NCBI GenBank assembly: GCA_946965045.2
Contig: OX337235.1
Span: 186,001 to 250,000, forward strand
Source of the DNA: Epithemia pelagica
Lineage: Eukaryota > Protista > Bacillariophyta
DNA: 64,000 bases
Reading direction: 5' to 3'
Shown: in pieces, positions 24,412-60,192 of the stretch
Layout: each line of letters opens with the position of its first letter
Numbering within the stretch: position 1 is the stretch's first letter
Translations under genes and position numbers: made by a program
The notes under the pieces: generated by a model
What the model saw: the letters and a program-made list of their open reading frames with translations, nothing else
What the model was told of the DNA's origin: nothing
The model's database searches: none

Positions 24412-25437
24412 ATGATGATGATGAGAATGATTGTCGTCCAATGGTTGGCCATGGGCCCTGCGGTCTTGGCTGGATCGTTGACAGTCCGCCGAGGATTGAC
24501 CGTGTCAGAAAAGTGCATTCTCGGTACGAACGAATTGACGGACAATGAGGAATTTCGTCTGGCCTTGGAAAAGGTGGCCGATGACATTCGAACAACCGAA
24601 GAGTATTGCCAAGGCCTGAATGCCGAAAAGGAGGGCAACTCGATGGAAGAAACGAAAAAGAATTTGTTTTGTGTCTTTGACGAATCGAAATTGGCTTCGG
24701 GTGCGGCCTATGTGGAAGCCTGTGAAAAGGCGGGGGGTTCCATTCATCAAAGCGATGTCCTGGTCACTTGCAACATTTGCACCTCCTCTTCGGAAACGAC
24801 GCAAGACGATGCCAATCTGCCGCGTGGGAAAATGGCCGTCTCGGCGGCCATGATGCAGCAGCAGCAGCCAGCAACCTTGCCTCAAGGAACTACGAATGGC
24901 AATCAAGACGGTATGATGCAAATGGAAATGACAGAACAAGAGTTGCATGCCACAGCGGAGGAGGCCACCAAAGAAACCTTTGAGTACGAGTATTTGAACA
25001 TGGACTTTTGCTTCCATCCCTTGGCTTGTAGTCAAGACGATATCACCAAAGCCATTCAAGAAGAAGCCAATTCCTTGCTGGATATGATGAAGGAAAGCAT
25101 TGAAGTCCTCAAGTCTTATAGCGGCACTGGTTCCATGTCCATTTCCTGCAGCGCTACGGTATTGTCCGAAGATGGAGAAATGGGGGAAACCATTGTGGTA
25201 CCCGAAGAAGGCAGTGGTGAAGAAGGAACGACCGAAGAAGAAGAACCCCAAGTGGAGGATCCAATGGACGACCTGCGCATGAATGAGACCGATATTGATG
25301 GCAATTCGACCGAATTGGATTCTAACGAGACTAGTACCGACGACGACCTAGAGTCATTGGCCGTTTCTCGGTTTGGCCTGGTGGGAGCTTCCTCAAGTGT
25401 CATAATGGCGTTGGCCCTTGCCGCCATGATGTGGTAG
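24412..25437 (+). CDS. RxL/8-Cys GPI-type surface protein, paralog 1
   Basis: Signal peptide, RGL before the first Cys, family Cys spacing (EKC, EYC, LFC, EAC..GG, VTC, YLN..C, LAC, ISC), acidic stalk, hydrophobic C-terminal tail. Confidence 0.85.
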   Translation: MMMMRMIVVQWLAMGPAVLAGSLTVRRGLTVSEKCILGTNELTDNEEFRLALEKVADDIRTTEEYCQGLNAEKEGNSMEETKKNLFCVFDESKLASGAAYVEACEKAGGSIHQSDVLVTCNICTSSSETTQDDANLPRGKMAVSAAMMQQQQPATLPQGTTNGNQDGMMQMEMTEQELHATAEEATKETFEYEYLNMDFCFHPLACSQDDITKAIQEEANSLLDMMKESIEVLKSYSGTGSMSISCSATVLSEDGEMGETIVVPEEGSGEEGTTEEEEPQVEDPMDDLRMNETDIDGNSTELDSNETSTDDDLESLAVSRFGLVGASSSVIMALALAAMMW

Positions 25438-25859
25438 ATCGATGGCTCGACCGACAAGGTTTTTCGAAACGGATGGAAGCAAGGATGGAATGATGGATTG
25501 GAACGGAGGACTCGATACTAATTTTCACAAGAAGATGTGCAAGGGACATTTGCTCAAGACACGAAACGATTGGATTCTTTGGATTCGTTCACACACACAC
25601 ACACACACAAGAAACTGCGCACGACACAATGGAACCCTGTAGAAATGAAATTGACAAGACGGCCCCATATGAATATATTTATGAGTTTTAGTTTACAAAA
25701 GAAAAGAAAAGAAAAAACTGTCAAGAAAGAATAACAAAAGAAACAAGAGAGTGCTACTAGCTGGTAAAGTGAAATGAAAAAGACAGGTCGAACAACAAGA
25801 GTCCTCCTTTTGCGGAACACTTGCAGTATTGTAGGCTTTGTAGAGTTGTGGTTTGTCGT

Positions 25860-26150
25860 CCCTTTTGCATGGATGGCAGTCCATCAAGGGCGAGCATTGC
25901 CCTACAGCGTCGCCTCCGACTCGACAGAAAGCAACGGCTACGTTTTAGCTTATATCGACCCAATGGCGTCTTCCCATACTTCGAATAGCGTTAGATCGAT
26001 CAGGCACTTTGTCGACATGTTGATACGAATCAAACTTGGTTCCATCGGAGGCCAAGGTTCCCGAATATAGTGCATGGTCAATTGTTGACCTTTCTTGGGG
26101 AAATTCGTCCCATCTCCTGCTCTCAAGACTTTCGTAACCAGTATCAGATT
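25860..26150 (-). pseudogene. FKBP12-type peptidyl-prolyl isomerase pseudogene
   Basis: VTKVLRAGDGTNFPKKGQQLTMHY in one frame, SGTLASDGTKFDS in another, then WEDAIGSI*; frameshifts and stops. Confidence 0.8.
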
Positions 26151-26222
26151 CAAACGCTTCACCAGAGGCGGTCTTCTCGATAGCAGCACGCGGTTCCGAC
26201 ATCAACCACAAAGTGTGCACTC

Positions 26223-27898
26223 TCAGCTCTGCCACGTGAAACCCGCTGCTGCCGACCTGCGAATCGTATCCGCTGTTGTGACGTCAATACTCACCGTGCT
26301 CGAGGTGCAAGAAATCTCAACCCTCGCAGCGGTTGACCGTCCGGGTGCCGTCCAATATCGTCCAAAGTTCACATTCAATGTACTACTTACACCTTCCAGC
26401 ACCACAACATAAACGTAACCTTGTCAAACGACAGTTTATCACGAACCACACAGACAAAATTTTGCCAGAACGTGTCCACGCAAAAACCATGGCTTGCACT
26501 CTTTGTGTACTGAAAAGCATAGAGTGTGTTTTGTAGGATTACGGCACCATCAATGTTTGCATAATTTGGAATGCTTGGGATCCAGTAGATCCCTTTGTCG
26601 TTTAGCTGCTGTACTCCTTCTGCCCCAGTGCCCGTGGCCTGGTGCACTCCAGTTATACCAGGGGAATTGGACTCTCGAAACCAGGCATGGAGGGCTTCTT
26701 CTAGGAAGATGCCTACGACAGTCCCACTCTTGATCTGCTTGCCAAACCTCAATCCATGAAGGTAAGCATCCAGATTTAGGCGACCACGGAGACCTTGCAA
26801 AACTGTCAATGAGTCCACAATTTGTACTGGCCTAGGAACCCTGTCAGGAACCGAACTATTTCCATTGAACATTGTGCGAAGCCTATCCGGGTTGCCTGAG
26901 TCGTCGTCGTTGTTTCTTGAAGTTGATGTCTTGACTAACCTAACTTTTTGTTCGTCCACTCTTTCGATGAGATCCATCAAGGATTCATAGATCTCCCGAC
27001 AGCCACCACAAACAGAATATCCTGCTCTCACGGCATCCCTGTCGAGGCCGAGCAACGTGAAACCTTGAATTACTTCGTCCTCACTCCAACCGTCCAGGAT
27101 CCACATATACAAATCCTTCTCGGCATTCTTGGGAAGTGGATGTCCTCCTGAGGTACAAAAATAATCGTAGTATGCATTCAAATCCCTCTCTTCGTCGTGT
27201 CGGGGACCATTCAGAAAAAGAATACAGTCATACTCTCCAAGTCTAAAAAGCCCTGCAACTTTCTTTTGGAAGGCTGGAAGGATGACGTAGGCGGACTTCT
27301 CGACTTTCTCGAATCGGCGGTTGTAGAACACCTTCAATTTTGTAGCAACGTTCAATTTTGTAGCAACGTTGCCCATGAAGAAAACGGAAACAAAACGCTC
27401 CTCTCTCGTTTTGCGTACGTACAGGACAGGCTTGTCCGCATGTAGTGCCTTGTGGAGGGCAGCGATGAAGAACAAGACAGACTTTCCCACACCCGGGGAG
27501 CCCAGCAAAACTCGGTTTGAACTTTCTCCGAGAACATCCTTCGAGAAATATCCGAAGATCGTTTTCATGCAATCTCAGACATAGATTTGTTCAGGCAGGA
27601 ACTGGTCCTTTGGCTCTACCAAATCACCGAGAACAGATTTTAGATTGATCACACGATCATCTGCAGTATCAGAGTGCTCATCGTCCCTTTCGGAGAAGAA
27701 ACGAAATAATCCTTGCTCCAGAGAAGTGGGTTCGAACTCATGAACGTGAAGCACTGAACCCAAGATCGATTTCGCGTACGCCAAATCTGGTTCCTTAAAA
27801 GAATGCGGCGGCGGCGGCGGTAGTGGCAGCGGTGGCGAAGGAGGTTGTACAGTGGCATCACGACCATCTTCCAAATCCATTGGACTTACGGTTGACAT
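26223..27898 (-). pseudogene. Crinkler-like P-loop NTPase + REase-fold protein, disrupted
   Basis: Walker A LLGSPGVGKS; C-terminal YWIPSIPNYANIDG...YAFQYTKSASH typical of CR-REase domains. In-frame TGA at 27575-27577; frameshift near 26420 (VYVVVLEG continues in another frame). Confidence 0.75.
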
Positions 27899-28391
27899 CC
27901 TTTGCAGACAGCAGACAGCAAACAGGGCACGGAAGAGATCAATGCGTGATGATCTTGCAACAAAACCCGAGGTTGGATAGTACCGGGCGACGTAAGGACC
28001 TGCCAAAGCTTCTCCTCTACTTAGAGGTGCTCTATACGGTATGCCAATGGGGAATCACACATAGCATAACGGACGACAGAAGGACTATTACATGAGCTGG
28101 CTGGCTGGCTCTCTCTGATCGCCGGGGGACTCTCCCAACGAGGTATGCCAGCTATCGTATTTACACTTTCTCGTCATCGCAAAATCTCTCTACTCCAAAT
28201 AATGAGCGATCCATATAACCCTCCCACAACCCACAACGGATGATATCTTACAATACATAGGAGGAACAACCAACGCGATTGAACAACAACCGCAACCTAC
28301 TCTCCTCTTCTACAAATTAATTACTTTGTCGGAGGCTCTATCGTGAGAATCGAATCCATTGATTTGTTTCTGTTGGTTACTCATCGTTATC

Positions 28392-29141
28392 ATGAACAGC
28401 AAACTCGTGTCTTCTTCCATCCTGGTGGCCCTCAGTGCTTTTACTCATACGGCATCGGCCGATTCTTCTGTGATTCACCAGCAAATCAAGGATGCAGTGG
28501 CCCAATGGTCGACACAATATCATCCTCGTCGACTGGATGTAGAACAATGTTTGACGGATACTGACGCGCTCTTTACGGCCAATCCAGCACTCACCGTGGC
28601 CTATGACGGCGTGGCGGCCGAACTTCAAACCTTGCAAAGCGATATTTGTGGCTCCATTAGCTTTCAATGCGAACTCAATGAAGATGATTTGGCATCGGCC
28701 GCCGGTTTGCGGGACGCCTGTGTCGAGGCAGGGGGCAAAATTCATGAATTTGACATGACAGTCTCGTGTGAGATTGGTGTGAATGGACAATCGGGCGTCA
28801 TTCCGGCCTTTACCTTTGATTACAAGAACCGCGATGAATGCCTCGCGGCCGATTGCGACCCGGACGCTGTGGCCGAGGCTTTGGGTCGTACGGCCGACCA
28901 AGCCCTGCAAGACATTCAAAACATTGACGGCTTTCCTTCAACTCTCGCATTGAACTGCGACACGCAATACTTCCCCAAACAACCAGTGGGTGAGGATGGT
29001 GATGTGGCGGTGGATCCGGATAGAGACAATCCATCACCTGACCTTTCGTCGCCTGACCTTTCGTCGGCTGGCAGTATCACCCAGAGTGTTTCGTTCCTTG
29101 CCGGAGTTGCCATGCTTGCGTCGGTCATCATCACCGTGTAA
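28392..29141 (+). CDS. RxL/8-Cys GPI-type surface protein, paralog 2
   Basis: Signal peptide MNSKLVSSSILVALSAFTHTASA; RRLDVEQC; 8 Cys; tail SSAGSITQSVSFLAGVAMLASVIITV. Confidence 0.9.
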   Translation: MNSKLVSSSILVALSAFTHTASADSSVIHQQIKDAVAQWSTQYHPRRLDVEQCLTDTDALFTANPALTVAYDGVAAELQTLQSDICGSISFQCELNEDDLASAAGLRDACVEAGGKIHEFDMTVSCEIGVNGQSGVIPAFTFDYKNRDECLAADCDPDAVAEALGRTADQALQDIQNIDGFPSTLALNCDTQYFPKQPVGEDGDVAVDPDRDNPSPDLSSPDLSSAGSITQSVSFLAGVAMLASVIITV

Positions 29142-29566
29142 GAATGCGTATACGTCAAACTTGGATATGACGGATGCGATGAAAACGATACAGTATGGAT
29201 GGATGTAGTGGGCATATGAGACTCAAGACTTGCTGCGATGAAAGAGGAGTGAGCAAAGCCTATCCTGACAGCCGCCAGGCAAAGACAAAACTTATACTAA
29301 TACAATGAGAACCACAGGTTGGGATTCTTTTCTATATTTCAAAGCCCGACCATTCCATTAGGGGAATTCTCCACGGTCCTGGGATGCACTGACCAATTTG
29401 AGGCTCTGCGATTCAAGCAACTGAGGACAAAACAGGGTGACTTGTTTACCGTCACGCAATTCGATAGCGAGACGCAACATCACGTTACCGTGGTTTAGGA
29501 TATACCCGACCCTGGACACATCGGTCCCCGATGAATGGCTTGCCTTGTTGCACTTGTCGGCTGCTT

Positions 29567-30271: not shown

Positions 30272-30487
30272 AACCGAGTTTGAGCATTCGGAAGAGAACT
30301 GACTCTAAAGGTGGCAGAGACGCAAGTCGGTATGGATCTGGCCATACGCACGTAATCTTTTTCTGTGAGCATTCGGAAGTACTGGCTTCTCAGGTAGGTG
30401 GGAGAGCCGAAAGGGGAGAAGATGGAAAATGATCAGGACGTTGTCATAAAATCAAGTTTCCCACGGAGCTCACTACTCTATCCAAAG

Positions 30488-30580: not shown

Positions 30581-30601
30581 TTTACTCGTTTCAAAATCAC
30601 C

Positions 30602-31414
30602 ATGGTCTTCTTCAGCAAGTTCGTCGTCGTGGTAGCAACCACTGCTTTCATGCCAACCGTCTCTGCAAAGAAGCGATTGCAACAAGTTTTGGCAAACCGG
30701 GACCTCAAGCGTTCTCTTGACCAGTACCCGCTTCGCCTGGGAGTTGGATCCCCCTTTGGCCGTTTTCATCGTGATCTCAACGCAGATCAGTGCGCAGAGG
30801 ACACTGAGGCTTTGTTTCTGGCCAACCCTGCCCTCCAAGACGCGGATGACAAGGTGTTGGATGAGATTCTAGCCTTGGAAGAGGAACTTTGTACCGACGA
30901 TGTCAATGTTTGTACCATTGACGAAGGCAGTGTCACCTCGGTTCCCCTTTTGCATGAGGCCTGTAGTAACGCAAAGGGAGCACTTTGGGAGTTTGACCTC
31001 GAGATTGATTGTGTTGTGAGAACGATTGCCACGGGCGAAACGCAAGACAAAAGCTTCCATTACTTGAATTCTCCCGAATGTTTGGCTCCCGACACCTGCC
31101 GATTTGTATATGTCGCCGTGGAGTATGAGACATTTGGCGAGGAAGAAGCGGACTTGATTGCATCCACACTTGCTTTAAGCGGAATAACGAGTGCAATTTG
31201 TGAGTCCAATGTGGCCCCTTCCATAAATTGGTTAGATTCCAACTATCAGCAGTGTTGGACAGACAGTTATGCAATGAATCGGGCTTATCCGGCACTTAAA
31301 GAAGCAGAAGACAAGTTTATGGAAGAGCTGTATTTTTGTACAAAGAACTGTACCATCGATGAGAGCAGTCTTCAATCTGCGCCTCTTTACCTGGAGAACG
31401 AAACTACTTCATGA
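30602..31414 (+). CDS. RxL/8-Cys family paralog 3: one full domain plus a truncated second domain, no GPI tail
   Basis: Signal peptide; RDLNADQC; 8 Cys; then QQCWTDSYAMNRAYPALKEAEDK...CTKNCTIDES restarts the domain before TGA. Confidence 0.8.
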   Translation: MVFFSKFVVVVATTAFMPTVSAKKRLQQVLANRDLKRSLDQYPLRLGVGSPFGRFHRDLNADQCAEDTEALFLANPALQDADDKVLDEILALEEELCTDDVNVCTIDEGSVTSVPLLHEACSNAKGALWEFDLEIDCVVRTIATGETQDKSFHYLNSPECLAPDTCRFVYVAVEYETFGEEEADLIASTLALSGITSAICESNVAPSINWLDSNYQQCWTDSYAMNRAYPALKEAEDKFMEELYFCTKNCTIDESSLQSAPLYLENETTS

Positions 31415-31907
31415 CATGTCATGAACAGCTTTCGATAGAGAAATCAAAACTTCCGACCACCGACACTGATCTTTGCCGAGCCTTTCAATGTGTACAACAC
31501 AGTGCAGCTGCCATGCCGATGACTCGGAAGTATCTAAATCCATGGCTCTCTAGGTAGCACCCAAAAATTGCTCCCCTTCTCCAAGCAACGAAACATGTCA
31601 TGAAGTTTTCGAGAGAGAGAAAACGCGAAACTTCCGACCTCTGACACTGTAATCTCTGCGTCTAGCATTGGACGAAGACTAGAGAACTGAGACCTCGCAA
31701 AAACAATAAACCACCTCTTTATCCCCACACAAATTCCAACCTTCCCAATTCAAAAAGTTTACAAGGTAAGAGACAGTGAAATCGCAACGTATCATGAGAG
31801 AAGAAGAATGATTCATGATGAGATCTCCGGGACGATTCTCCCTCATACCAATGCAATTCTTTTCTGTTCCTCTGCTGCCAGTTCGACGTTACAAACACAG
31901 ATTCATC

Positions 31908-32615
31908 ATGGGCATTTTCAGCAAGCTTTTTCTTGTGGTAGCGACCACGGCTCTCGTGCCCAACGTCTCTGCCCACATGCGGATGCGTCGCTTCATGAAC
32001 GAAATGGAACAACCCATGGGTATCATTGAACAAGAGCATCGTGGTCTGGATTCCGATACCGGTGTCGGCGTTGACGAGTGCGCCAACGCCACAGACAAAC
32101 TGTTTGAAGACAATCCAGATGTCGCAACAGCCGATGACAAGGTTTTTGATGAAATTACTGCTTTGGAAGAGGAACTCTGTGGAGAAGGTTGGAGTGACAC
32201 CATGACCGAGTGTATTGTGGACGAAGGCAGTGTCAAATCTGTCCCCGAATTGGAGGCGGCCTGTGGCAACACGGGCGACGGAAAAATGTTTAGTTTGGAT
32301 ACCAAAGTTCGATGCGATGCAACCAATGCCACTTCCAACGTCAAACTTGAATTTGTCAAAGAATACTTGAATTCTCCCGAATGTTCACCCTGTTCGAATG
32401 CTGCCTTGACAGAGGATAATGACGCATATGGCGACTTCGAAGCCACCTTTGTCCAGGGAGAGCTGACGTTGGCAGGTTATAAGGATGTGAGTTGCACTCA
32501 TTCTGGTGCCGTCCGTGGTCCAAAGGAAACGAGTTCTGCTGCCGTTCCGACTGGGGCGATCAGCATGGTCTCGGTCGGAAGTCTCTTGGTGTCTTTTGTG
32601 GCTCTGTTGATTTAG
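31908..32615 (+). CDS. RxL/8-Cys GPI-type surface protein, paralog 4
   Basis: Signal peptide MGIFSKLFLVVATTALVPNVSA (close to paralog 3); RGL; 8 Cys; tail TSSAAVPTGAISMVSVGSLLVSFVALLI. Confidence 0.9.
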   Translation: MGIFSKLFLVVATTALVPNVSAHMRMRRFMNEMEQPMGIIEQEHRGLDSDTGVGVDECANATDKLFEDNPDVATADDKVFDEITALEEELCGEGWSDTMTECIVDEGSVKSVPELEAACGNTGDGKMFSLDTKVRCDATNATSNVKLEFVKEYLNSPECSPCSNAALTEDNDAYGDFEATFVQGELTLAGYKDVSCTHSGAVRGPKETSSAAVPTGAISMVSVGSLLVSFVALLI

Positions 32616-32922
32616 ACGAAAAGTATCTTGAGAAAAATGAATCCAGTACAAAGGTCCTGGAGGAAGATTCAATCTTTTAATAGCAACTGAAAAATAATGA
32701 AAGACGAACGAAAACAAAGACCTCTTCATTGTCCACCTCTTACCGGTAATTACACAGTCCAAGCACCATGCGTTGAATCTTTCCGCTCAAATTTGTATAG
32801 GACCAATGTGTAGTGCTCAACGCATATACAGTTAAGTCTTAAAGCCGAAATGCCACATGTTTGAAACTTTAACTTTAGAAGTACTTCGAGTTAGCTAGTC
32901 TTATGATTATCATTTGAATCTA

Positions 32923-33408
32923 CCGTAAATGTTGGGTCTATTGCACCATCCGTTGATTGACCGGATGCTTTTTACTATAGGTCCAAGTAGTAGGCCTCAA
33001 CGGATTGGTGGTTAATTTTTTGAATCTATAATAGAATAATTCCAGAAATTGCTTGAAAGAATAACTCAAGAACACTATTGAATTGACCGATGGTGAGACC
33101 ATCATTTTAAAGAGCTCGTCACGCGCTTTCCGAATCACTGCGTTTCATTAAGATCGGACCTACCCTTCTAATGTTATATAAGGTCGAAATGTATGCAGTC
33201 AGTTCGTGAAAGATAAGGATTTTTTGGCATGGTCTCTCCCCCCACGCTCTCCACTACAACTATGATTTCTTCTTTATATACCTCTTAGAGCAAGTGGGGC
33301 TCTGTTGGAGGGAAGGGCGGGCGAATTTCTGGCAGACAGGCTCCTTTAGCAGTTAAATCATGCGTTTGGTGCAATAAAGCAATGGTGCAATAGACCCAAC
33401 ATTTACGG
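32923..33408. mobile_element. Tc1/mariner-type MITE (486 bp, 27-bp perfect TIRs, TA TSD)
   Basis: ta|ccgtaaatgttgggtctattgcaccat ... atggtgcaatagacccaacatttacgg|ta; AT-rich non-coding interior. Confidence 0.9.
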
Positions 33409-33953
33409 TACTTCAAAAGAGGATTCGATCCCACCCGGGCTCATCAAAATCCGACTTATCGTTCTCATTTTATGGACGGATGAAACTCTTTGGGGGCATG
33501 CTCGTTTTACGGGTAAATCGTCCGTTTTTTGCACCATTCCAATGGTGCTTGGACTGTGTAATTACCGGTAGGAAAGTGAAAGTGCATTTCAATAAGTCTA
33601 TATGCGACTGCAAAACATTGCCGGCATGACATCCACATGTTTCCGCAATCCCATAAACAAGGATTTTAAATTTTTCCGCATGGCCGAAAAGTTCATTCGC
33701 GTTCACTATACTGAGAGCTGAGAGAGCAATTCCCAGTCGCGTTCGTCCACTTCTCCTTGCATTCCATTGATCTCATAATCTAGAACAATTCCAAAGATTG
33801 CATTCGACAACATTCCAAGGTACGATACCAACAGTTTCAAACAAGAACATGAGCCTTTCGTCCTGAATTGCATGCATTCTTACTTCAAACCATGGTTTTT
33901 CGTTCGAACCACTAAACAGAATCGCTCCAAACTAAAATTTCAGAATCACGATC

Positions 33954-34709
33954 ATGAAGCTCGTTCACAACCTTTGTCTCGGTGCTGTCGTCTTGGTGGC
34001 CATTTCCCGTCATACTGCCAATGGTGCTTCTCCCATTGAGACTGTTCGTACCCAAATCCATCAAGCCTTGAGCGAATGGAACCCAAGCAGCAATCGTCGT
34101 CGTCACGACCGCAACCTTGTCGTCGAGACCGCTGCCTCATTCCAGCACCACGACCAGCGACGTGAGCTCAACTTTGCTCAGTGTCTATCCGATACCAGGG
34201 AGATGTTTGACAACAGTCCTGCTCTTCAGCTCGCCGATGACAAGGTCAAGGACGAAGTCGATACCTTGGAGGATGAGAACTGTGAAGATGGTGATACCCT
34301 CTGTATTGTCGATGAAGGCACGGTCGATTCGGTTCCTCTCTTGAAACAGGCTTGCAAAGCCAACCGGGGTACCATTTATGAGTTTGATCGCAAATTGGAA
34401 TGCCGCTTGACGACTATTGCGACCGGCGAATCCGAAACGATTCGATTCCATTACTTGAATTCGCCCGAATGTTTGGACCCCGACACGTGTACCGCGGCCG
34501 ATGTTGCGGCTGCCTTTGAACAATCGGCCGATGAGGCAATGGCCAATCTCGAAGCCCGTTTTGCTGTGGAGGGACTGTTGAATGTGGATTGTGACTCGGA
34601 TGTGACCCTTTCCAGCACTTCATCCTCGGATGCTGGCATGCTGACTGGCAATGCCATGGTCTCCTTGTTCGGTGGCGCCTTGATGGTCGTTGCTGGTATG
34701 TTGGTCTAG
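33954..34709 (+). CDS. RxL/8-Cys GPI-type surface protein, paralog 5
   Basis: Signal peptide; RRELNFAQC; 8 Cys; FHYLNSPECL shared with paralog 3; tail SSDAGMLTGNAMVSLFGGALMVVAGMLV. Confidence 0.9.
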   Translation: MKLVHNLCLGAVVLVAISRHTANGASPIETVRTQIHQALSEWNPSSNRRRHDRNLVVETAASFQHHDQRRELNFAQCLSDTREMFDNSPALQLADDKVKDEVDTLEDENCEDGDTLCIVDEGTVDSVPLLKQACKANRGTIYEFDRKLECRLTTIATGESETIRFHYLNSPECLDPDTCTAADVAAAFEQSADEAMANLEARFAVEGLLNVDCDSDVTLSSTSSSDAGMLTGNAMVSLFGGALMVVAGMLV

Positions 34710-36273
34710 AGAGGACCTTATTGTGGATAGCCGGTTTCCTGCAGAAAGTCCCTTGAAGACCATGGATATTGGATGAATGACCTTGCAACAGGGGATTTGG
34801 TTTCTTCTGCAGTATATTGTGTCTGGTTAGTAATAAAAGTAATAGGTAACGCATATAGCAAAGAATCTGGTGTTCATTCCGAAATACAGACCTTCCCTAT
34901 GATCCATACTGAGATACTTGTCCTAAACAACACAGAAGGTGACATGATCGAATACAGTCATTGGTCAGCAAATTGCTTGTTGATTCGTTGTCATCAATGC
35001 TGCTGACGGCGAATCACTGGGATCTTGATGTCGATTGTACTCGGTTGATTGTTGAAAGCACTTGAGGTAGCGTTTGTGGTAGTTTTGATTCGTCTTGTTT
35101 CCCCAAGGGAATTCGACATATAGAGGGAAGTAATGTATCAATGATCTCTTGCTGAGTCCAGACTCTGTGAATGACGTGATGTACCAATCTGGTCAAGTCG
35201 ACTTGAACGTGGAAACACCACAGCTCCAAACATGTATAGAAACAAAAGAGGACGAGAATGGGTGGACTCTCTGGAGAGTTTTTTGGCAAGGGGGTCGTGA
35301 GGATTGCGAACACTGTCCCAGCCATGGCACCGCCGTTTTCCTCCGCCAACCTAAGGATGCTGGTGTTCCTTCATTCCCCCCAAACAACAGACCGCCATGG
35401 TCTCTCTTCCCGAAACAGAGGACCATCCATCCGTCCTTTGGCTGTGGTACATGTCGACGTTTCGTGGACTTGTTTGTCTCTCCACTCTCTCGAGTACTAT
35501 ACTACTATCCAGTGAGACGGGCACAATCGCCAGCATCCAAAGTGTTTCTCCCCAACAAAAAAAGAACCATTCTTGTAAACCAAGGACATGGGAAACCTTG
35601 TTGCTCTGGCAGATTGTGCGCAGAGGAGTTTCCGGAATCATGCCTCGATTTTGTCCGCCAAATGTGTGTACCATTTGGCAGCAATGGCGCGCCAAGGGCA
35701 ATCCATACGAATCGTCAAACCGAAGCGGCGTACAAAGACGGAATCCATTCTTGCCCGATGCATCATTCCTAGTGGTGGTGGAGTTGTGGTATGATGCCTC
35801 GTCCGTGGATGTTGATTGGCATGGTTGCGTTCGTCCTCTCCAATTCTGTTTTTGGATTGTCCCAGGCATTACTCTGTCCTCTCCACCGGCATTTTCGAGC
35901 TATAGAGTTCTCTGAGTGGCATTGGCATTGGAGGATTGGTGGGAAATGAGCCCGGGAGGTGCACAGAGAGAGAGCGATTAGAGATTATGGAATTCCCGTT
36001 CGCGACTCGCTTCCGACACAACGGGACTGACTTGTACACTTTGCAGTTACAGTCGACTCCAGCTCGCGACTCGTGCGACTGCCTTCGTCGGAATCTTTGG
36101 GTACCGACCGTCTCATTTTTTCTTCGACTCGCGATACGAGAGTCCATTCGAACGAAAAAGGTTTGATTGCACCTACCTAGGATAAAAACACGAAAAAGTC
36201 CCAAGGACCCCACCAGAATTTCAACTCTGTGGTTTCCAAAGAAAGAAAAAAGTAAACGAAACCACAAACACAC

Positions 36274-37029
36274 ATGTTGTCGTCGTCACCAAGAACCATG
36301 AGAGTGCTAGTTCCTCGTCGTCGTCGTTGTCCCTTTTTAATGGGTCATGGCACTCTGTTGTTTGCCATTTGGGCCGTGGTCTCCGTGTGGATCACGGCCG
36401 TTCCAGGAGTCCGAGCCAACCCTCTGGTGGATCCGCCACACAAGGAGAGGGTGGAGGACCATGACAGTGATGGCGACCAAACGGATCCCTGTGAGACGGC
36501 CACCCAAGCCTTGATGGAGCGTCATCCCGCCTTGCAACAAGCCCAAGTGGCCTCGCATCAAGAATTGCAAGAATTGGAACGCGCCCTCTGTCAAGATACC
36601 GCATCGTCCATTTGTTGGTTGGACGGTCACGAGTTGTGGACGTCTCAGCAATTGCACGAGGCCTGTCAAGCAGCCGGAGGTGTCATTTTGGAATTTGAAT
36701 TGCACGTGACGTGTGACGCTCGTTTGCATACCGGTCAAGCCATGCTGGTCCAATACCACTATCAAAATGTGGACCGATGCATGGCCGCCACGGACGCCGT
36801 TTGTCAAGCCCACCAAGTGGCCCAATCCATGGACCAGCATGCCACAACGACATGGTGGGCCATGGCCATGGAACAAACCATGACCTTTCCCAACCTGGAA
36901 TCCGTCTACTGTCATTCCACTGTCGAACCACAATCTACAACGTCGGCTGCCAATACGACTCGAACCACACCCATGTGGATCCTCCTGTCGTCGTTGTTGC
37001 TGGGAACCACCACCATGGGGTGGATCTAA
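36274..37029 (+). CDS. 8-Cys GPI-type surface protein, paralog 6 (no RxL)
   Basis: Hydrophobic leader LLFAIWAVVSVWITAVPGVRA; C..AT..L...HPAL...ALC..SIC..EAC..GG..VTC..YQN..RC..VC..VYC; tail TSAANTTRTTPMWILLSSLLLG. Confidence 0.85.
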   Translation: MLSSSPRTMRVLVPRRRRCPFLMGHGTLLFAIWAVVSVWITAVPGVRANPLVDPPHKERVEDHDSDGDQTDPCETATQALMERHPALQQAQVASHQELQELERALCQDTASSICWLDGHELWTSQQLHEACQAAGGVILEFELHVTCDARLHTGQAMLVQYHYQNVDRCMAATDAVCQAHQVAQSMDQHATTTWWAMAMEQTMTFPNLESVYCHSTVEPQSTTSAANTTRTTPMWILLSSLLLGTTTMGWI

Positions 37030-40313: not shown

Positions 40314-40345
<32 letters not shown>

Positions 40346-43101: not shown

Positions 43102-46038
<2,937 letters not shown>

Positions 46039-46372
46039 TCATGGGTCGCGCGAATCAGCCGCTTGTAGGTCGTTCTAAAGGATCGCGAAAAGATTCCATG
46101 CCAGAGAAACGAAAAGTAGTGCGCTCGCCGACGACGAACGTTTGTGTCATTGTTCGACGGCAAACACCCAAAAGAGGCCGGCCCAACAAACAAAGAACGA
46201 CCCACCCAGCAAACAAAAAGAAGAAAAAGAAGAAGAAGCGTGTTGTGGTGTATCACTCTCTGTGTGTCTGGAATCCATCGCACGGAGAAGGAACGAATTC
46301 GATCACAAGCGAGAGCGAATCCAGGGAATCGCAGACCCGATCGCAGCGGCATCCTAGTACAAGAATAGCACC

Positions 46373-47497
46373 ATGTCCTCATCGTCTTGGTTGGTCCGTC
46401 TCGGCCAACGGTTGGGTTACGATTACGATTGGTTGGCCATTGTGCAAACCATGCAAGAGGTGCATGACGAATCCGTTTGGCCCGGTGTCACGGTACCCAA
46501 CTCGGTCGTGTGGAATACCCTTGTTCCCGTGACCGTGACCAGTACGACCGTCGCCACACTGGTCTTTGTCGCGCTCTGTCATTCCACAGTGTTGGAACAA
46601 GCCGGACTCTTGACGGGTCTGGAAGACGACGAAAAGAACCACCAGCAAACGACTACAAATACAACGACTACTACGACGAAACAAGTCTTGTTGTTGAAAC
46701 GCAAAACCGCCTATGCCGTGGTGAATTTTTTCTTTACCATTCTCTTGACCGTGGCTGGTCTCTGGTTTCAATGGACCACCATGACGGATCGTCGTAGTCT
46801 CTCGAGAACGGAAACGGTGACGGGCTTGGTCCACGATTCTCACATCTTGTACTTGTCGTGTTGGCAAATGGGCTGGCAACTTTGGGCCTTGCCAATTGCT
46901 CTCTGGTATCCTGGCGTGGAAGACTCTTCTGCCATGCTCGTGCATCATGTCGCCGTTCTCTGTGTCACGAGCATGACCAGTTTCTTGCATGTGGGGTTTC
47001 GTTCCTTTACGCCCTACTTTTATGGCACCATTGAAGGCAGTACGGTCTTGTTGATTCTCATGAATGCCTACAAACAACGACCGGCTTGGCGACGACCGGG
47101 CACGGTCGGTGCCGTCCACTATACCCGCATTCGACTCGCCTTTAGTGCCGCCTTTTTATTGCTCCGCGTCCTGTTGTGGATTCCCTACAAGGTGCAATTT
47201 TTACTCTATTTACTGGCTGCCGTCGTGGTCACGACACCGGATCCGAATGATACGAGTCATGGGAGTGGTGGTAGGGTGACCGTGCCCCGTTTGTGCCACT
47301 ATGCCTATGTCGTGAATTCCGTCACGTCCGTCTTGCTCAGTCTCTTGCAATTGTATTGGGCCTTTTTGATTGTCCAAGGATTGGTCCGCTTCTTTGTGGT
47401 GGGCCAACGGAAACAAGAGAAGAAGCAAGATTCCAAGAATACGAATACGACAACAACGACGATGACCGTAGACCACCCAACAAAGAAACACGAGTAA
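46373..47497 (+). CDS. TLC (TRAM/LAG1/CLN8) domain membrane protein
   Basis: Multiple TM segments; MLVHHVAV, GTIEGSTVLL, AFLLLRV, LQLYWAFLIV match the TLC pattern. Confidence 0.85.
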   Translation: MSSSSWLVRLGQRLGYDYDWLAIVQTMQEVHDESVWPGVTVPNSVVWNTLVPVTVTSTTVATLVFVALCHSTVLEQAGLLTGLEDDEKNHQQTTTNTTTTTTKQVLLLKRKTAYAVVNFFFTILLTVAGLWFQWTTMTDRRSLSRTETVTGLVHDSHILYLSCWQMGWQLWALPIALWYPGVEDSSAMLVHHVAVLCVTSMTSFLHVGFRSFTPYFYGTIEGSTVLLILMNAYKQRPAWRRPGTVGAVHYTRIRLAFSAAFLLLRVLLWIPYKVQFLLYLLAAVVVTTPDPNDTSHGSGGRVTVPRLCHYAYVVNSVTSVLLSLLQLYWAFLIVQGLVRFFVVGQRKQEKKQDSKNTNTTTTTMTVDHPTKKHE

Positions 47498-47805
47498 CCA
47501 GTTTCTTGAACGACACAACACCCAAGAGAGGGAGCCATACATAACACACAATCATCACACTAGTGGTCGAGAATTTCATCCCAACACAGTTGTAGACCCA
47601 AAACGACCCCTACACACACACACCACCACAGTGTGCCTCCTTGTTTGTTTGTTTGTTTCGAGTTTGGGGGGACGGTCACTGGAACAACGACACGGGGTGT
47701 GGACCATTCTAGTATTCTATAGACTAATAGTAGAGGAGAGAACGAATTGGGGTCGAGACTGTTTTTCTGTCTGTCTGTCTGTCTCTCTCTCTCTCGCACA
47801 CACAC

Positions 47806-47843
<38 letters not shown>

Positions 47844-48291
47844 CTCGTAGTAGACTGTGTGGGAACCCATCACGGAAACGACTCGCCATGTTCCCCTGGA
47901 TCCCACCAAGCGGTCGGCTCTCGTTCCATTCTGTAGAGCGCTTGTATCTATAGTATCTAGAGTTTTGGTGATGGATGCGGATTCCTCCTCCAAAACAACC
48001 CAAAAAATAGCCACATGAATGATACGGACCATAGAATGGCCATAGAATGGGTCATTGGGAACACGCGCTCCTGGTGATGGGGTGACGACGACAGGATGGA
48101 ACACACGCACCAAGGTGTGTGGCGATTCTCGTCGTGTATCCATAATAGCAGACGACGACGACATGTGTGTCGAATGGGAGTCCAGGAGAAACGGGTCCGT
48201 GTCACAGTTCTAGAATGATGGTTGAGATTTGCACCACACCAACACTCTTGGATTCCTGGTTCGAGGCTTGTCGTTGTTGTCGTCGTCGTTT

Positions 48292-50307
48292 CTAGGGTGG
48301 CTGGGTTCGTCCTTCTTGTTGTCCTTGTCGTCCTTCTTGTCCTTCTCGTCGCCGTTGTTGTTTTCGATTCTTGTTGTTCTTGTGCGGGGACACGTACGTT
48401 TCGGGCCGACTGATTTGCAGGCCAAAATGATGCAAGGTATGTGGCAATTGCGCTTGATGGGGGGCAAACAAGGTGTGCAGTCGTTGTCGAAACTCGTGGG
48501 ACAGAATGTCGTCGGCCGATACCAAGGAATTGCTGGATTTGGTCCCCGCTTTGCGCGGTGGCGTGTACAACGGGAGAGTCGTCAATTGCGTGGCAATGCG
48601 CTTCCACACGTCGTCCCGCGTAGTGTTGTTGTTGTTGTGGTTGTTGGGTTTGAAACGGAGGGGTGCCGTGGCATTGACGCCAATAAAGTCCAAGACCATT
48701 TCCACATAGGCTTGGGGATTGGTGGCCATGTCTTGGGCATTCAGCACCAAAAGTGTCGTGCGAGGACTCCGCCCCATGCCGACAATGGCTTGCAACCACT
48801 GACGCAATTGAATGTCATACAAACTGCGTCCCAAGACGGCTTCCAAACTGGTCGAGGTATAGTCGTACCAAGCCACATCTTGTTCGGGCGATCCCACGTA
48901 GGCGGCACTGGTATTGTCCAATCCCAATTTGGACAGTAATTTCCAATCCTTTTCCACCCACTCTTGCAAGGACAATGGCAATCCTCGTTGTTGCGCGGCA
49001 TGATAATGTCGCAAAATCCGGACAATGGGATCTTGCAAGACCACAACCAGTTGGACCCAGGGTGCAATGCACAACAATCGACGGGGTGTAACCGAACTGT
49101 ACAAGAGGTAGCCGGGCGTGGCATCGAGAGAAATGACATTGGGATCCTGTTGCAATCGACCGGGATCGTAAAAGGCGGGAGAATGGTACAAGCGTTGTCG
49201 AGCGGCATGGACATTGGTGACTTGGGTTGTGGACGATACGTATTTGCGGACATGACCATCCAAAAAGAATTGGGTTTCCAAAGGACCGGGAGGGACAATT
49301 TGCACATGCTTGGTGAGCAATCGGGCCAAGAGCGTTGTACCGCCACTGTATTTGACACCGGCCACCACGACAGCCGGAGCACGACGATGCCAGGAGGTGG
49401 CATCTTCGTACCAATCCACCGTTCGGCCGAAGGGAGCGTGGAAATTACACCATTTTTGTTCAAAACTCCGACTGGTATTGGTCGGTGTCAAGGGAAGAGG
49501 AGGAGGACGATATTGATAGGGAACCAAGGGAGGGAGACGAGAAGAATTGGACGAGTGTCGACCACTGGAAGAAGATGCATGGCTCTGTTTCTTGCTTGGT
49601 GGTGGTGGTGATGATGATGTTTTTGTGGGCAGTACGGTTGGTGATGGTGATGGTGGTACCGTGGTAGGGCGCAAGGATGGTGGTGAAGATGAAGATGAAA
49701 ACTGTTTGGCTGGTGGTTTGGTTTCAGTGTTGTTGTGGTGGTGGGTGGTGGTGGAAGGAGAAGAAGGGTGGGTGGAAGAATCCGTGTCAGCTGAAAAGGT
49801 GGATTGAAATTCCTGCCAAAACGCAAAAGAGTGACTCGCAGTATGAGACGATGATGATGAGGATTCCACCGGTACGATCCCCGAATGATCTACCCCCACC
49901 ACCCCACCACCACCAGGATCATCCTTCTTGGACTTGATCGGTACTTCCAAGGAGGCATCTTTCCCATTGTTAGATTCGTTTGGAACCGTTGTCATTGTCG
50001 TCGTGGGAGTCCCCGCAAGACTCGATGGAGTCGTTGTTGGATTGGTAATAATAGGGTGATGGTAGGAGGGATGGTTGTTGTTATTGTTGGATGGTTGCTG
50101 TCGACTACGTGGTCGTGGATGCATATAGATGTAGCTTACCGTAAAATTGAGGGCCACACAGACCACCGCCACGACACAAACCCACGAGACCAGTTGGCGC
50201 ACTCGTCGCGATCCATAGGAAGAACGACTGTTGTTGTTGTTGGTATGGTTGTGGTGATCCATGCTGCTGCTAATCATCATGGGAGATAGTGAAGACGAGG
50301 AGCTCAT
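48292..50307 (-). CDS. Type II membrane sulfotransferase-like protein (heparan-sulfate sulfotransferase fold)
   Basis: N-terminal TM (LVSWVCVVAVVCVALNFTV), S/T/P-rich stem; PAVVVAGVKYSGGTT, DATPGYL and VVVLQDPIVRILRHY. Confidence 0.85.
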   Translation of the reverse strand: MSSSSSLSPMMISSSMDHHNHTNNNNSRSSYGSRRVRQLVSWVCVVAVVCVALNFTVSYIYMHPRPRSRQQPSNNNNNHPSYHHPIITNPTTTPSSLAGTPTTTMTTVPNESNNGKDASLEVPIKSKKDDPGGGGVVGVDHSGIVPVESSSSSSHTASHSFAFWQEFQSTFSADTDSSTHPSSPSTTTHHHNNTETKPPAKQFSSSSSPPSLRPTTVPPSPSPTVLPTKTSSSPPPPSKKQSHASSSSGRHSSNSSRLPPLVPYQYRPPPLPLTPTNTSRSFEQKWCNFHAPFGRTVDWYEDATSWHRRAPAVVVAGVKYSGGTTLLARLLTKHVQIVPPGPLETQFFLDGHVRKYVSSTTQVTNVHAARQRLYHSPAFYDPGRLQQDPNVISLDATPGYLLYSSVTPRRLLCIAPWVQLVVVLQDPIVRILRHYHAAQQRGLPLSLQEWVEKDWKLLSKLGLDNTSAAYVGSPEQDVAWYDYTSTSLEAVLGRSLYDIQLRQWLQAIVGMGRSPRTTLLVLNAQDMATNPQAYVEMVLDFIGVNATAPLRFKPNNHNNNNTTRDDVWKRIATQLTTLPLYTPPRKAGTKSSNSLVSADDILSHEFRQRLHTLFAPHQAQLPHTLHHFGLQISRPETYVSPHKNNKNRKQQRRREGQEGRQGQQEGRTQPP

Positions 50308-50895
50308 GATGGCATCCAATTCTTTTGTTGCGTCCGTCTCCAAATCACAACCGAAAGAGAGAGAGCCACACTGGCACACCAAGAAAAAGAGTCACACACG
50401 GAAGAAGAGGAACACGTGGGAAAGTGTTGGTAGATCGAACGAGAGAGTGCCGGATGGTCTCTACTAGTGCTGTCGATTGTTGTTATCGTCGTCGTCTCTT
50501 GTGCTACTCGCAGTAGTGATGAGGGGTCGTCGTCTTGTGTGTGTCTGCAAAGTGTCGGTGGTGGTCTTTTTTCTCTTCATCTCATGGTGGTGTGGTCGTG
50601 TGTGTGTGGTCATTCTCGTCGTCAATCGTCAATGGCTTTGTGGACTGCCTGACACGACTGCCAAAAAGATCGCATCTAAGTCGCGTAACATGAAACGCCT
50701 ATGAGTCGCTCTAATAAATTCGGAGTCGGCTGAACAAGGCTGCCTTGAAAACCAACCCGGATCGATGGATCCAAAGAACAACGATCACCAGGTGCCCGAG
50801 TCTCTCAAACTATGCTCTCGCCAATAATACTCCATTACGGCCCTAAAACCGACCTACGCCAATCACTTCTTGTGGTTGTTGTTGTTGCTGCTATC

Positions 50896-54155: not shown

Positions 54156-54188
<33 letters not shown>

Positions 54189-56673: not shown

Positions 56674-57597
56674 ATGACAATGATGATTGTCCATCACAGT
56701 CTTGCTTCGGTTAGCATAATGCTCATGACGTGGATCATGATGAGTCCAACTGGGTTTGCAGGAAGGGCAACGAAGAAGCTCCCACCCTATTATCGTTTGA
56801 TGGACGAGCTTATCCTCCATAATAAACAAGTAAAACATACGGTCAAGAGCGGCAACGCGTTACCATCAAACCAAAAACAAGGAAACGTAAACACCACTCC
56901 TTCTCGGTCAGCGACTTTGTGCGGTGCACAGGAGAGAAGCAAGCAGCGCAATGGCTTGAAGAACATGAATCACACGTGCTTGACGGGCACCGAGGAACTC
57001 TTTACAAACAATCCAGAACTAGCACGTGCCCGTAGCATGTTCTACGACCAACTCCTGAACAGCAGCAATTCGTCCTCCTTGTGGACCGAGGTTGAGACAA
57101 ACTCGTGGCAGTGTGTGGTCGATGGAGCAACAAACGTTCGTTCCTCAAAGGTGTTTGCGGAGACATGCAATGCAGTTGGTGGGAAAACCGTAATCTCGAG
57201 CATGGTGATCCAGTGTCGTGTGAGATCCAAAGTGACAGCGGACAAAGCCACCGAATTTGAGGCAAGCCTCAACCATTTCATCAATTGCTTGGACATTGTT
57301 ACATGTGACAACCGCAATGTGCTCATCCTTCAGAAAAAGCTTGGAAACGACCTTGTCCGTCGATTCCAACAAGTTCCTACCGAGAAGTTCCCCGGCTTTT
57401 TCACTTCCTGCACGGGAAGGCGTGAGGTTCAAATTGGCTCCAATCACCACGTGCACATCTCTAATCGTCGTCATAAAGAACCTGCGACACTGTTGGTTCG
57501 ATTGGTGTTGTTCTTCTTTGCATTACTCATGGGAATTGAAACGGGCGTAGCACTTGCAGTGGTCCTGGCTTGCAAAACAGCGAGCCATCCAAAATAG
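56674..57597 (+). CDS. 8-Cys family paralog 7 (basic, 7 family Cys, TM-like tail)
   Basis: HTCLTGTEELFTNNPEL, WQCVVDG, TCNAVGG, IQC, LNHFINC, VTC, TSC; N-terminal hydrophobic leader; C-terminal hydrophobic segment plus short tail. Confidence 0.8.
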   Translation: MTMMIVHHSLASVSIMLMTWIMMSPTGFAGRATKKLPPYYRLMDELILHNKQVKHTVKSGNALPSNQKQGNVNTTPSRSATLCGAQERSKQRNGLKNMNHTCLTGTEELFTNNPELARARSMFYDQLLNSSNSSSLWTEVETNSWQCVVDGATNVRSSKVFAETCNAVGGKTVISSMVIQCRVRSKVTADKATEFEASLNHFINCLDIVTCDNRNVLILQKKLGNDLVRRFQQVPTEKFPGFFTSCTGRREVQIGSNHHVHISNRRHKEPATLLVRLVLFFFALLMGIETGVALAVVLACKTASHPK

Positions 57598-58131
57598 TGA
57601 GAGTCCCCTTAAAGACGCTTTTGAAAAAGAAACATCCGATGCTGAAACCAAAATACAGATCATGACGCATTGTACAGGTAGTAGTAAGTAGGACATAGCG
57701 TGAGAAGAATGTTCGGGCACTGTTGACCATAGGCACTTGATGTATGGAATGGAAATCCTGAGACGACTCTGGCATCAAAGTATATCGTGGGGTTGGTGAT
57801 TGCTCTTGGGTCAATTGGACTTCAACCATGACTTTTTCCATCATTCATCGATGTCCGAATCGAATATGAACGTCTTTGACTTGAATGTGTATGTCCGAGT
57901 CAGACCGGTGTGTTCAATGTTCAAGAGCATGCAATTGCCCATAGTGTCTTCAAGTCCATCACGAAGCGAACCAAATCAAATCACGGAAACGGTCAAGTCA
58001 TGGATGATGATTTTGGTGATAGGACAAAACCTCCAAATTCTTCGTTATCACAAATACTGAAACGGTAGATTCAAAATCAACCTTTCCTCTTGTTAGATAC
58101 TAAAACGAATACAGCAGCATTGACAGAGAGC

Positions 58132-58899
58132 ATGATTCTCGTGAGGAACTTTGGCCTGTCCCATTTCTTGCTTGCAACCATTGCGATGTTGCCTACAAGC
58201 TTCTCCTCTCCTTATTTCCCCCATGCCAAGGATCTCTTTGAAAAACACCACGTGTTTTCTTCAGAGGTCCTCTCTGACCAGAAGAACAGTACCAGAAGCC
58301 TTCTTCGTCGTTCTCAGATGACTGGTTTCTATCCTCAGTCTCATCGTCTTCTTCCTCGTGAACTATCTACGGACGACGAGGAATGTCAGGACTCGTACGA
58401 TCAGCTCTACCAAGACAATCCCGAACTAGACGCCATCTTCGACGACCTGATGGAAAACGAAGAACCGTTCGAAGACGCTACCTGTACCAGGAAACGCATT
58501 GATTGGATGGTTTGCTCGATGGATGGTAACCGTCTGCCGGAGACGGGCGAATTTGTCGAAAAAGGCGACGAGGTGGGAGGTGATGTATTGTGGGTTAACC
58601 TGTTCGTCAAGTGCACAAAGAACGGACAGCCTCCCATAACTGCAGAGGTTCGTATGACCAATTTGGCCGACTGTTTCCCCGACGTACAAGAGTGTCAAAA
58701 TTTGGATCTGGGTGAGATGGAAGATGAATTCAAAGCTGTCTTTTTGGAAGAGTTGGAACAGGAATTGAAAGATGAGATGCCGGGTGAGACTTTCCGTTGC
58801 ACAGCGGAGGTGAAGATCAGGGAAGATTCTGCTTCCACGAAGACTCTCCCCATTCTGTTGGTTGTTACTTCAGTTGTCGGCTGGTTCTGGATTACGTAG
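58132..58899 (+). CDS. RxL/8-Cys GPI-type surface protein, paralog 8 (fourth Cys replaced)
   Basis: Signal peptide; RELSTDDEEC..LYQDNPEL; tail EDSASTKTLPILLVVTSVVGWFWIT. Confidence 0.88.
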   Translation: MILVRNFGLSHFLLATIAMLPTSFSSPYFPHAKDLFEKHHVFSSEVLSDQKNSTRSLLRRSQMTGFYPQSHRLLPRELSTDDEECQDSYDQLYQDNPELDAIFDDLMENEEPFEDATCTRKRIDWMVCSMDGNRLPETGEFVEKGDEVGGDVLWVNLFVKCTKNGQPPITAEVRMTNLADCFPDVQECQNLDLGEMEDEFKAVFLEELEQELKDEMPGETFRCTAEVKIREDSASTKTLPILLVVTSVVGWFWIT

Positions 58900-59346
58900 G
58901 GCCCAGGAAGGCCGCTTGTATTGTGCATAGGACAGAAGGCTTCATCATCTGCTCAATATAATGTATGTTCTTTCAGTTTATTGGCCATCCTTCATGGCGG
59001 TACCGAGTTTCTCTGAACGTTCCATTGTTGTCGAGTCGTTCTGCACGAACCACCAGCGACAAACCTTGTCGTGCGAGGAAATGGCTGGTGAGATCCTTGA
59101 CACATGAACGAGTTTATCTGTACGTGCGCTTTTTTACGAGCTCGTAGAGATATCCTTTTTATAAGTTTGTACCTGCCATCAAACTTCAACAACAGGCTCG
59201 CATTTCGAAGTTTTCGTACGGATCATCCAGAATGAGAAGCGAACAGGTCGATTGGTTATTGCACCAGGTATCTACTCTGCTCATAAAATCAACACCATTC
59301 TTGATTGATAAGAACCAGTCCCACAACACTCTACCCACACACCACC

Positions 59347-60192
59347 ATGAGGTTTTTGGGGTGTCCCTCCATCTTTGTCAGCGGAGTACTCGTTGTTGCT
59401 CCTCTACTTCCCACAACAGTTTTTGCCCGTTCCTCCCATTTCTTCTCCATCATTGACAGTGCCTTTGGGCGCACTGTTCCCACGACTGTCTTTGACCCAG
59501 ACGGAGTCCTCACCACCACAACGACTGATCCAGAGTCAATAGAAGACGCCGAGAGCAGCAGCAACAACAACCCAAATGGCAACACCCGAGCTTTGGGCAA
59601 ATCCTTTCTTTTCCCGTCGTTGTTGGTGAATCGCGACCTTGCTGGCCCAAGTACGGAATGCATGGAGGCATCCGACGCCATTTTTGCCGACGATCCCAAA
59701 CTTGAAGAATTGACGACGCAAATGCAAGACGAAGTGGCCTTTGATGAATCCAGCTGCAAGGCCCATCGTCCCGACTATTAAGTCTGTGTCGTAGATGGTT
59801 CTCATTTGACGGGCCATGACGAGTTTCGTCGCATTTGTCAGGAGGTTGGTGGAGATGGTCTGTCTGTCACCTTTTTTGTGGTCTGTGTCATGGACCATGA
59901 TCTTTTGGACGGCCCGGTGACGGGTGAATTTTATCTCCGCAATGTTCCCCATTGTTTCAATGGAACCGCTTGCGACAATGACGACATGCAAGCCTTGGAA
60001 GAAGAAGGGGGAGATGACATTGTCCAGCAAGCTGAAAGTAGTTTGGAAGACGAATTTGGGGGTGCCACCTTTGACTGTACGGCCAAGGTTACGGTGAAAC
60101 GAGATGCCGCAGCGGTGCCGAATTCCAGCAGTTTCGCCATGTGGTTGCTGCTGACAACGACTGTTGTGAGTTCTCTGGTCGACCTTGTTTAG
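59347..60192 (+). pseudogene. RxL/8-Cys GPI-type surface protein, paralog 9, with one in-frame TAA (59779-59781)
   Basis: RDLAGPSTEC..IFADDPKL...SSCKAHRPDY*VCVVDG continues in frame to the GPI-type tail. Confidence 0.85.

Follow-up and report, generated by a model that had tools for sequence, protein, structure and literature searches.

An acidic eight-cysteine protein family with an R-x-L boundary and mostly GPI-type tails in the diatom Epithemia pelagica

A stretch of 64,000 nucleotides from the diatom Epithemia pelagica, positions 186,001 to 250,000 of contig OX337235.1 (C8:186001-250000; assembly of 60.5 Mb in 23 contigs) and called the window here, carries two clusters of plus-strand open reading frames (ORFs) between positions 24412 and 60192 that a first-pass annotation, made from the letters alone, could not assign to a named family. 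The question raised by this locus is whether these frames encode one kind of protein and, if so, what kind of protein this might be. The nine genes are a real, undescribed family. Their products are probably secreted precursors that are processed at an R-x-L (RXL) site and present a polyanionic domain at a surface, in most cases on a glycosylphosphatidylinositol (GPI) anchor; cleavage, anchor, location and ligand are inferred from the features of the proteins as described below.

Nine loci and one eight-cysteine domain

An ATG was found at the start of all nine plus-strand frames, each of which opens a reading frame with the common scaffold, and the nine products fit one profile around a single domain of ~140 residues with eight cysteines (Cys1 to Cys8) that is common to all. 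In all-against-all BLASTP comparisons most pairs were connected at E-values from 1e-44 (genes 3 versus 5) to about 1e-4; for gene 9 the short initial piece was connected mainly via gene 8. A six-frame scan of the whole window with the family hidden Markov model (HMM) returned exactly nine loci, all on the plus strand, plus a partial domain inside gene 3, and no further copy of the family. Single profile, BLASTP and six-frame scan agree on the shared scaffold that had been proposed for these loci, and the alignment of the paralogues in one profile, suggested as a check, was obtained. The loci are as follows.

Gene 1, 24412..25437, plus strand: 341 aa; behind the signal peptide a short propeptide with RGL at its end, then the domain, into which ~75 residues rich in Q/M/T are inserted, a long acidic stalk and a GPI-type tail
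Gene 2, 28392..29141, plus strand: 249 aa; signal peptide, propeptide ending RRL, 8-Cys domain at 28542-28961, GPI-type tail
Gene 3, 30602..31414, plus strand: 270 aa; signal peptide, RDL, full domain at 30785-31204, truncated second domain at 31247-31390 in which the protein terminates
Gene 4, 31908..32615, plus strand: 235 aa; signal peptide, RGL, 8-Cys domain, GPI-type tail
Gene 5, 33954..34709, plus strand: 251 aa; signal peptide, 47-residue propeptide ending REL, 8-Cys domain, GPI-type tail
Gene 6, 36274..37029, plus strand: 251 aa; long N-terminal hydrophobic leader, no R-x-L, 8-Cys domain, GPI-type tail
Gene 7, 56674..57597, plus strand: 307 aa; no R-x-L, Cys2 replaced, near-neutral domain (isoelectric point, pI, 6.9), and a transmembrane helix followed by 7 residues in place of a GPI-type end
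Gene 8, 58132..58899, plus strand: 255 aa; signal peptide, REL, domain without Cys4, GPI-type tail
Gene 9, 59347..60192, plus strand: in-frame TAA at 59779-59781; RDL, 8 Cys and GPI-type tail all present

The description of nine ORFs had to be amended for gene 9, which is interrupted by the in-frame TAA. An intron at this stop was considered and rejected: the stop falls in a residue column of the paralogue alignment, and the alternate haplotig of the same assembly reads CAA at this position within an intact 283-aa gene. Because the position aligns with a paralogue residue, the TAA was taken as a nonsense codon. Gene 3 is predicted to be soluble since its product lacks a hydrophobic tail.

Searching the genome with the domain profile gave 12 members, every one on contig C8. 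Those outside the window are listed below.

C8 ~114.7 kb, minus strand: extra member, 286 aa, GPI-type tail
C8 ~261.3 kb: extra member, 372 aa, GPI-type tail
C8 ~524.7 kb (C8:524716): extra member, 387 aa, transmembrane helix and a cytosolic tail of roughly 70 residues

A profile search against 1.84 billion representative proteins, counted as clusters of 50% identity, yielded 236 clusters at E<=1e-3 and 64 at E<=1e-10. The 30 clusters that were looked up had no name or were entered as 'hypothetical protein', and the sole organism named was Epithemia clementina, a raphid pennate diatom, so that the family is so far named in diatoms only. For the TLC-domain gene neighbouring the clusters, the nearest named relative was also from Epithemia and was only 35% identical, and the collection therefore holds no close named relative of the window organism. 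Among the 143 best homologues one domain was present in 106 and two to five domains in 37. A word-indexed homologue search returned the query alone with gene 5 and 6 proteins with the domain profile.

The statement that the family has no name withstood the searches. Pfam gave no match in the nine proteins (E<=1) or in the 143 homologues (E<=0.001), the Protein Data Bank (PDB) searched by sequence profile gave a single chance hit (E = 0.015), and no description of an acidic 8-Cys family was found in the literature on diatom GPI, RXL and cysteine-rich proteins. Neither Pfam nor the public-protein clusters that were looked up, the searches that had been recommended, gave a match to a well-described family.

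The R-x-L site, the membrane anchor and the fold

The seven R-x-L tripeptides reported before (RGL, RRL, RDL, RGL, REL, REL and RDL) were all recovered, with the Leu 5-11 residues before Cys1, and seven of the nine window genes thereby show an R-x-L of silicanin type after the signal peptide. For the wider family the spacing was counted from the last R-x-L before Cys1 on 122 homologues with a complete first domain; in 62 of them the distance from the end of the motif to Cys1 was 5-6 residues and in 88 it was at most 13, at a background R.L frequency elsewhere in the same proteins of 0.15% per position. The local consensus reads (H/N/R)-R-x-L-(E/Q)-(V/L)-S-(D/E/Q)-(Q/E)-C, and the Arg of R-x-L is at least 90% conserved in an alignment of 54 full-length sequences.

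Fixed spacing taken by itself would also be compatible with a motif that is part of the fold, and it is the multi-domain relatives that decide against this. In these proteins 14 of 23 first domains have an R-x-L before them, as against 0 of 36 inner domains (Fisher p = 6e-8), which come after Pro/Thr/Ser-rich linkers instead. The motif is therefore a property of the N-terminal end of the mature protein and not of the domain. Full-length modelling of gene 5 by AlphaFold placed the REL in coil (residues 63-73) just before helix 1, with low confidence upstream of it. The R-x-L thus behaves as a propeptide boundary, as the first-pass annotation had suspected, in that it is position-specific across species and found at first domains only; cleavage at this site would follow from the position of the motif.

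One subfamily has in its propeptides an amphipathic helix that contains a conserved Trp (pattern I..Q...A...W); it is located in gene 2 at 28464-28529, in gene 5 at 34035-34090, in Epithemia P0011 and in homologue P0016, and was modelled at modest confidence (predicted local distance difference test, pLDDT, about 67-76). This helix could be a sorting signal or an intramolecular chaperone.

At the other end of the precursors, the GPI-type class pattern, namely a signal peptide together with a small-residue site, a spacer and a terminal hydrophobic stretch, was found by simple rules in seven of the nine genes; the same seven-fold count of small residues followed by a hydrophobic tail had been given before, and the tail is uncharged and runs for 18-28 residues up to the C-terminus. 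Across the homologues a hydrophobic tail at the C-terminus was present in 109 of 143 proteins and a signal-like N-terminus in about 100. The stalk from the last Cys to the tail was predicted to be disordered (pLDDT below 50). GPI-type ends are the rule in this family, and the genome carries genes for GPI transamidase subunits (Gpi16/PIG-T, Gaa1 and a C13 peptidase). Diatom GPI-anchored proteins are almost unstudied, and a full-text literature search on diatom GPI found no family described.

The domain itself was modelled by AlphaFold with confidence (pLDDT 94, predicted template modelling score 0.84, 62-sequence alignment). The modelled elements are ordered H-H-E-H-E-E-H-E, including two consecutive long strands, and form an alpha/beta arrangement with a four-stranded sheet. 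With this model Foldseek found no convincing match in the PDB (best E = 0.3) or in BFVD (best E = 0.026), VIA-align against 48,161 chains gave a best Z of 5.0, which lies inside the noise range, and the ESM Atlas gave a TM-score of at most 0.42 when searched by shape and no usable match when searched by features with two members. The structural check recommended for these proteins thus ended in a confident model and no convincing structural match; the predicted fold appears to be unmatched, and the absence of a match is no proof of a new fold. Each of Cys1 to Cys7 is retained in 97% or more of 119 domains. The same 119 domains are strongly acidic, with a median pI of 4.05 and 98% of them below pI 5, and a domain net charge of -14 to -28 was calculated for ten of the twelve genome members.

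Weighing the explanations

The features described above suggest a precursor in which a signal peptide would be followed by a variable propeptide ending in (H/N/R)-R-x-L, by the domain 5-6 residues further on, by a stalk and by a GPI signal. The predicted domain would be an alpha/beta unit of ~140 residues that has eight conserved Cys and carries a net charge of roughly -14 to -28, the predicted stalk short, Ser/Thr-rich and disordered, and the end a putative C-terminal GPI attachment signal. During maturation the precursor would enter the endoplasmic reticulum, where the signal peptide would be cut and four disulfides would form, GPI transamidase would swap the hydrophobic tail for a lipid anchor, and a diatom RXL protease would cut off the propeptide in the secretory pathway. 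The acidic domain would then stand on the outer (or lumenal) leaflet of the membrane, most likely as a polyanionic module with a binding or structural role towards cations or cationic components of the wall.

Several points weigh against this explanation. The signal-peptide and GPI calls were made with simple hydropathy and end-pattern rules, and any ligand or role of the domain would be deduced from its charge only. Genes 6 and 7 and about a quarter of the homologues are without R-x-L. A transmembrane helix with a cytosolic tail is present in gene 7, in the member at C8:524716 and in P0020 and P0060, and an N-terminal anchor lies before the domain in P0030 and P0043; because some members bear such transmembrane or N-terminal anchors, GPI anchoring is not universal. 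This minority with other anchors fits membrane tethering as a conserved need. Among the 30 clusters looked up, the attribution to diatoms comes from the Epithemia clementina members only. Concerning transcription, contig depth is a weak measure of expression, and the sequencing run used for this purpose (X4) is not on record as RNA and was judged RNA-like by its behaviour, with ~39 Mb of contigs and patchy cover.

In run X4 unspliced contigs span 33938-34849, which comprises gene 5 and its flanks, at a word depth of about 2000-2600. The depth falls to about 20 in 31150-32666, which takes in the end of gene 3 as well as gene 4, so that gene 5 is covered ~100 times more than gene 4, and gene 6 and most of the intergenic DNA have no cover; in the DNA run X1 the depth is uniform, at about 120-200. 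Gene 5 is likely transcribed, and without introns. Apparent 'joints' in the read table were rejected as gene 3 sequence cross-matching paralogues 4 and 5. Additionally, a third variant of gene 5 was seen at 34328, 34358 and 34379 (D125E, K135N and one synonymous change) at ~1/3 of the depth in both X1 and X4; as the assembled haplotypes are identical there, it may represent a further allele or copy. In the gap between genes 4 and 5, positions 32742-33736 reach an X1 depth of about 600-1600, 5-10 times the surrounding 120-200, and are therefore a multi-copy repeat, probably a transposon fragment.

The best surviving alternative assigns the family to the biosilica machinery, with the domain GPI-tethered to the lumenal face of the silica deposition vesicle (SDV) membrane or to the plasma membrane under the wall, where it would bind long-chain polyamines or Lys-rich silaffins or cingulins in a role like that of Silicanin-1, with no kinship to it. 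This is unlikely. It draws on the net charge of the domain and on the fact that the sole named homologues come from a diatom. Moreover, biosilica-associated diatom proteins typically carry, behind the signal peptide, a stretch with R-x-L at its end; such RXL domains are removed from silaffins by an unidentified protease, their removal has been suggested for Silicanin-1 (Sin1/SiMat7), and Sin1 is membrane-anchored and cooperates with polyamines (PMC5525289). Sin1 is also similar in its overall build, with a signal peptide and propeptide ending in R-x-L, a Cys-containing lumenal or extracellular domain and a C-terminal anchor, and in being a diatom protein (PMC5525289).

A sequence or motif link to the silicanins or frustulins is missing, however, and no silica-proteome or silicon-response data for an acidic 8-Cys family were found in the literature search. 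Sin1 is a protein of 426 aa whose NQ-rich domain contains 18 conserved Cys, and its invariant GGQKFAL stands before a type 1 transmembrane helix that is followed by a 20-residue cytosolic tail (PMC5525289), whereas the present proteins have a ~140-residue domain, 8 Cys and mostly GPI-type tails. GGQKFAL occurred in 0 of 198 family sequences, and N or Q runs in only 16 of 198. Membership in the silicanins was rejected, there being no 18-Cys NQ-rich domain and no GGQKFAL. Frustulins are likewise acidic, cysteine-rich, secreted diatom proteins with a presequence; their acidic cysteine-rich (ACR) domains contain the hexapeptides CQGDCD/CEGDCD and VPGCSG, and they have polyglycine or proline-rich linkers and a tryptophan-rich C-terminal domain (PMC4712521). 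The C-termini of the present proteins are, in contrast, short hydrophobic tails without a Trp-rich end; the frustulin hexapeptides were found in 0 of 198 family sequences and in none of the six frames of the window, and Gly runs of 5 or more in 4 of 198. Membership in the frustulins was rejected on the absence of hexapeptides, linkers and Trp-rich end, these few Gly runs aside.

A bolder proposal, which we consider unlikely, holds that the domain represents a new fold and is, among the components of the wall-forming or surface machinery of diatoms, the first with a GPI anchor, a polyanion that organises polyamines, silaffins or Ca2+. If this were so, the RXL protease would activate the module by exposing an N-terminus five residues before Cys1, and the module would act at the membrane face where silica or organic casing forms.

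According to a further alternative, already implied by the word 'diversifying' in the first-pass annotation, the array is a recognition or adhesion repertoire, for mating, cell-cell contact, bacteria or pathogens, whose variability is due to positive selection. The many divergent tandem copies, at 15-46% protein identity, speak for it. The haplotypes needed for an evaluation are contained in one public assembly, in which the window haplotype (99.995% identical) is accompanied by alternate haplotigs that are 93-97% identical in DNA; P0021 and P0006, considered as other species, were rejected as such and are alternate haplotigs of the same assembly. Genes 1-4 of cluster 1 lie outside the cover of the alternate haplotig (L014, L016), which is unusually divergent, the neighbouring TLC protein being only 88% identical. 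At its end this haplotig (L016:3-1927 versus window 34594-36522) repeats the DNA downstream of gene 5 at 91% identity, which reflects a structural variant or else a contig-end misassembly.

Ratios of nonsynonymous to synonymous change (dN/dS) were taken between haplotypes, as synonymous sites are saturated between paralogues at their 15-46% protein identity. Gene 9 gave 0.74 and gene 8 0.23, and gene 7 showed 5 nonsynonymous versus 1 synonymous change, values which rest on few changes and for which the control ORFs may be mis-delimited. Gene 7 is frameshifted in the alternate haplotig, and together with the stop in gene 9 such nonsense and frameshift alleles suggest birth-and-death turnover, which along with the ratios of genes 7 and 9 would suit a repertoire under positive selection. 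The raised ratios are confined to the genes with broken alleles, though, a pattern in keeping with relaxed and not with positive selection. In gene 5 the haplotypes have the same sequence, and in gene 6 a single nonsynonymous change sets them apart, despite the difference of 3-7% in DNA. Cluster 2 shows decay, with losses of Cys and R-x-L and one broken allele per haplotype.

The tree of 119 domains also argues against a repertoire of this kind. Genes 3, 4 and 5 form a clade that two outside sequences adjoin, one of them from Epithemia (Shimodaira-Hasegawa-like approximate likelihood ratio test, SH-aLRT, 90); genes 7, 8 and 9 with the 261-kb member form a separate supported clade (95); and genes 1, 2 and 6 with the 114-kb member are deep and without resolved placement. 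From this topology the two clusters are old subfamilies, with long-branched paralogues, kept adjacent, and not a recent burst. Three homologues examined in other organisms were single-copy within 10 kb either side, among housekeeping genes. Taken together, a positively selected repertoire is quite improbable. From the earlier interpretation the unnamed family, the R-x-L boundary and the GPI-type tails were upheld, and the diversification was not.

Least probable, and very doubtful, is a surface carrier of small ligands or metals that would act as a functional analogue of plant LTPG, fungal CFEM haem binders or oomycete elicitin-like sterol binders, for although the build is alike (signal peptide, small disulfide-locked domain, Ser/Thr stalk, GPI signal), the LTP, CFEM and elicitin models of Pfam matched none of the nine proteins (E<=1) or 143 homologues (E<=0.001), the model is alpha/beta with a sheet and not an all-helical basket, and the folds in question are absent from the VIA and Foldseek lists. 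More generally, a signal peptide, one or more disulfide-locked domains, a stalk and a GPI signal are combined in the 8-Cys LTPG of plants, the fungal CFEM proteins and the apicomplexan SRS/6-Cys proteins, and some such GPI-anchored Cys-rich families lie in tandem arrays. The likeness of the present family to LTPG, CFEM and SRS/6-Cys proteins is one of build only, as Pfam was negative, the element order differs and their folds were absent from the searches; the R-x-L propeptide is a diatom feature.

Neighbouring genes and meaning of the family

Between the two clusters, at 43102-50382, a GH28 (polygalacturonase-like) gene, the TLC-domain gene mentioned above and a weak sulfotransferase-like ORF were found, which could relate to extracellular polysaccharide chemistry. 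Upstream of gene 1 an open frame of 1757 codons (18187-23460) was present, Ser/Pro/Gln-rich and without a Pfam match, which looks like a low-complexity nuclear-type protein unrelated to the acidic 8-Cys family.

The probable secreted, RXL-processed and mostly GPI-anchored surface proteins of this family bear on several questions. Until now the RXL propeptide has counted as a hallmark of biosilica proteins, and which protease cuts it has yet to be established; the unusually position-specific R-x-L of this family offers a clean substrate set for finding that protease and for defining its rules. The family comprises at least 236 sequence clusters with a confidently predicted, unmatched fold, and its domain is a candidate surface-display scaffold for diatoms. 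Of the possible roles, one in the assembly of wall or silica is the most interesting. Should the domain bind polyamines or Ca2+, membrane anchoring would be connected with the assembly of the wall.

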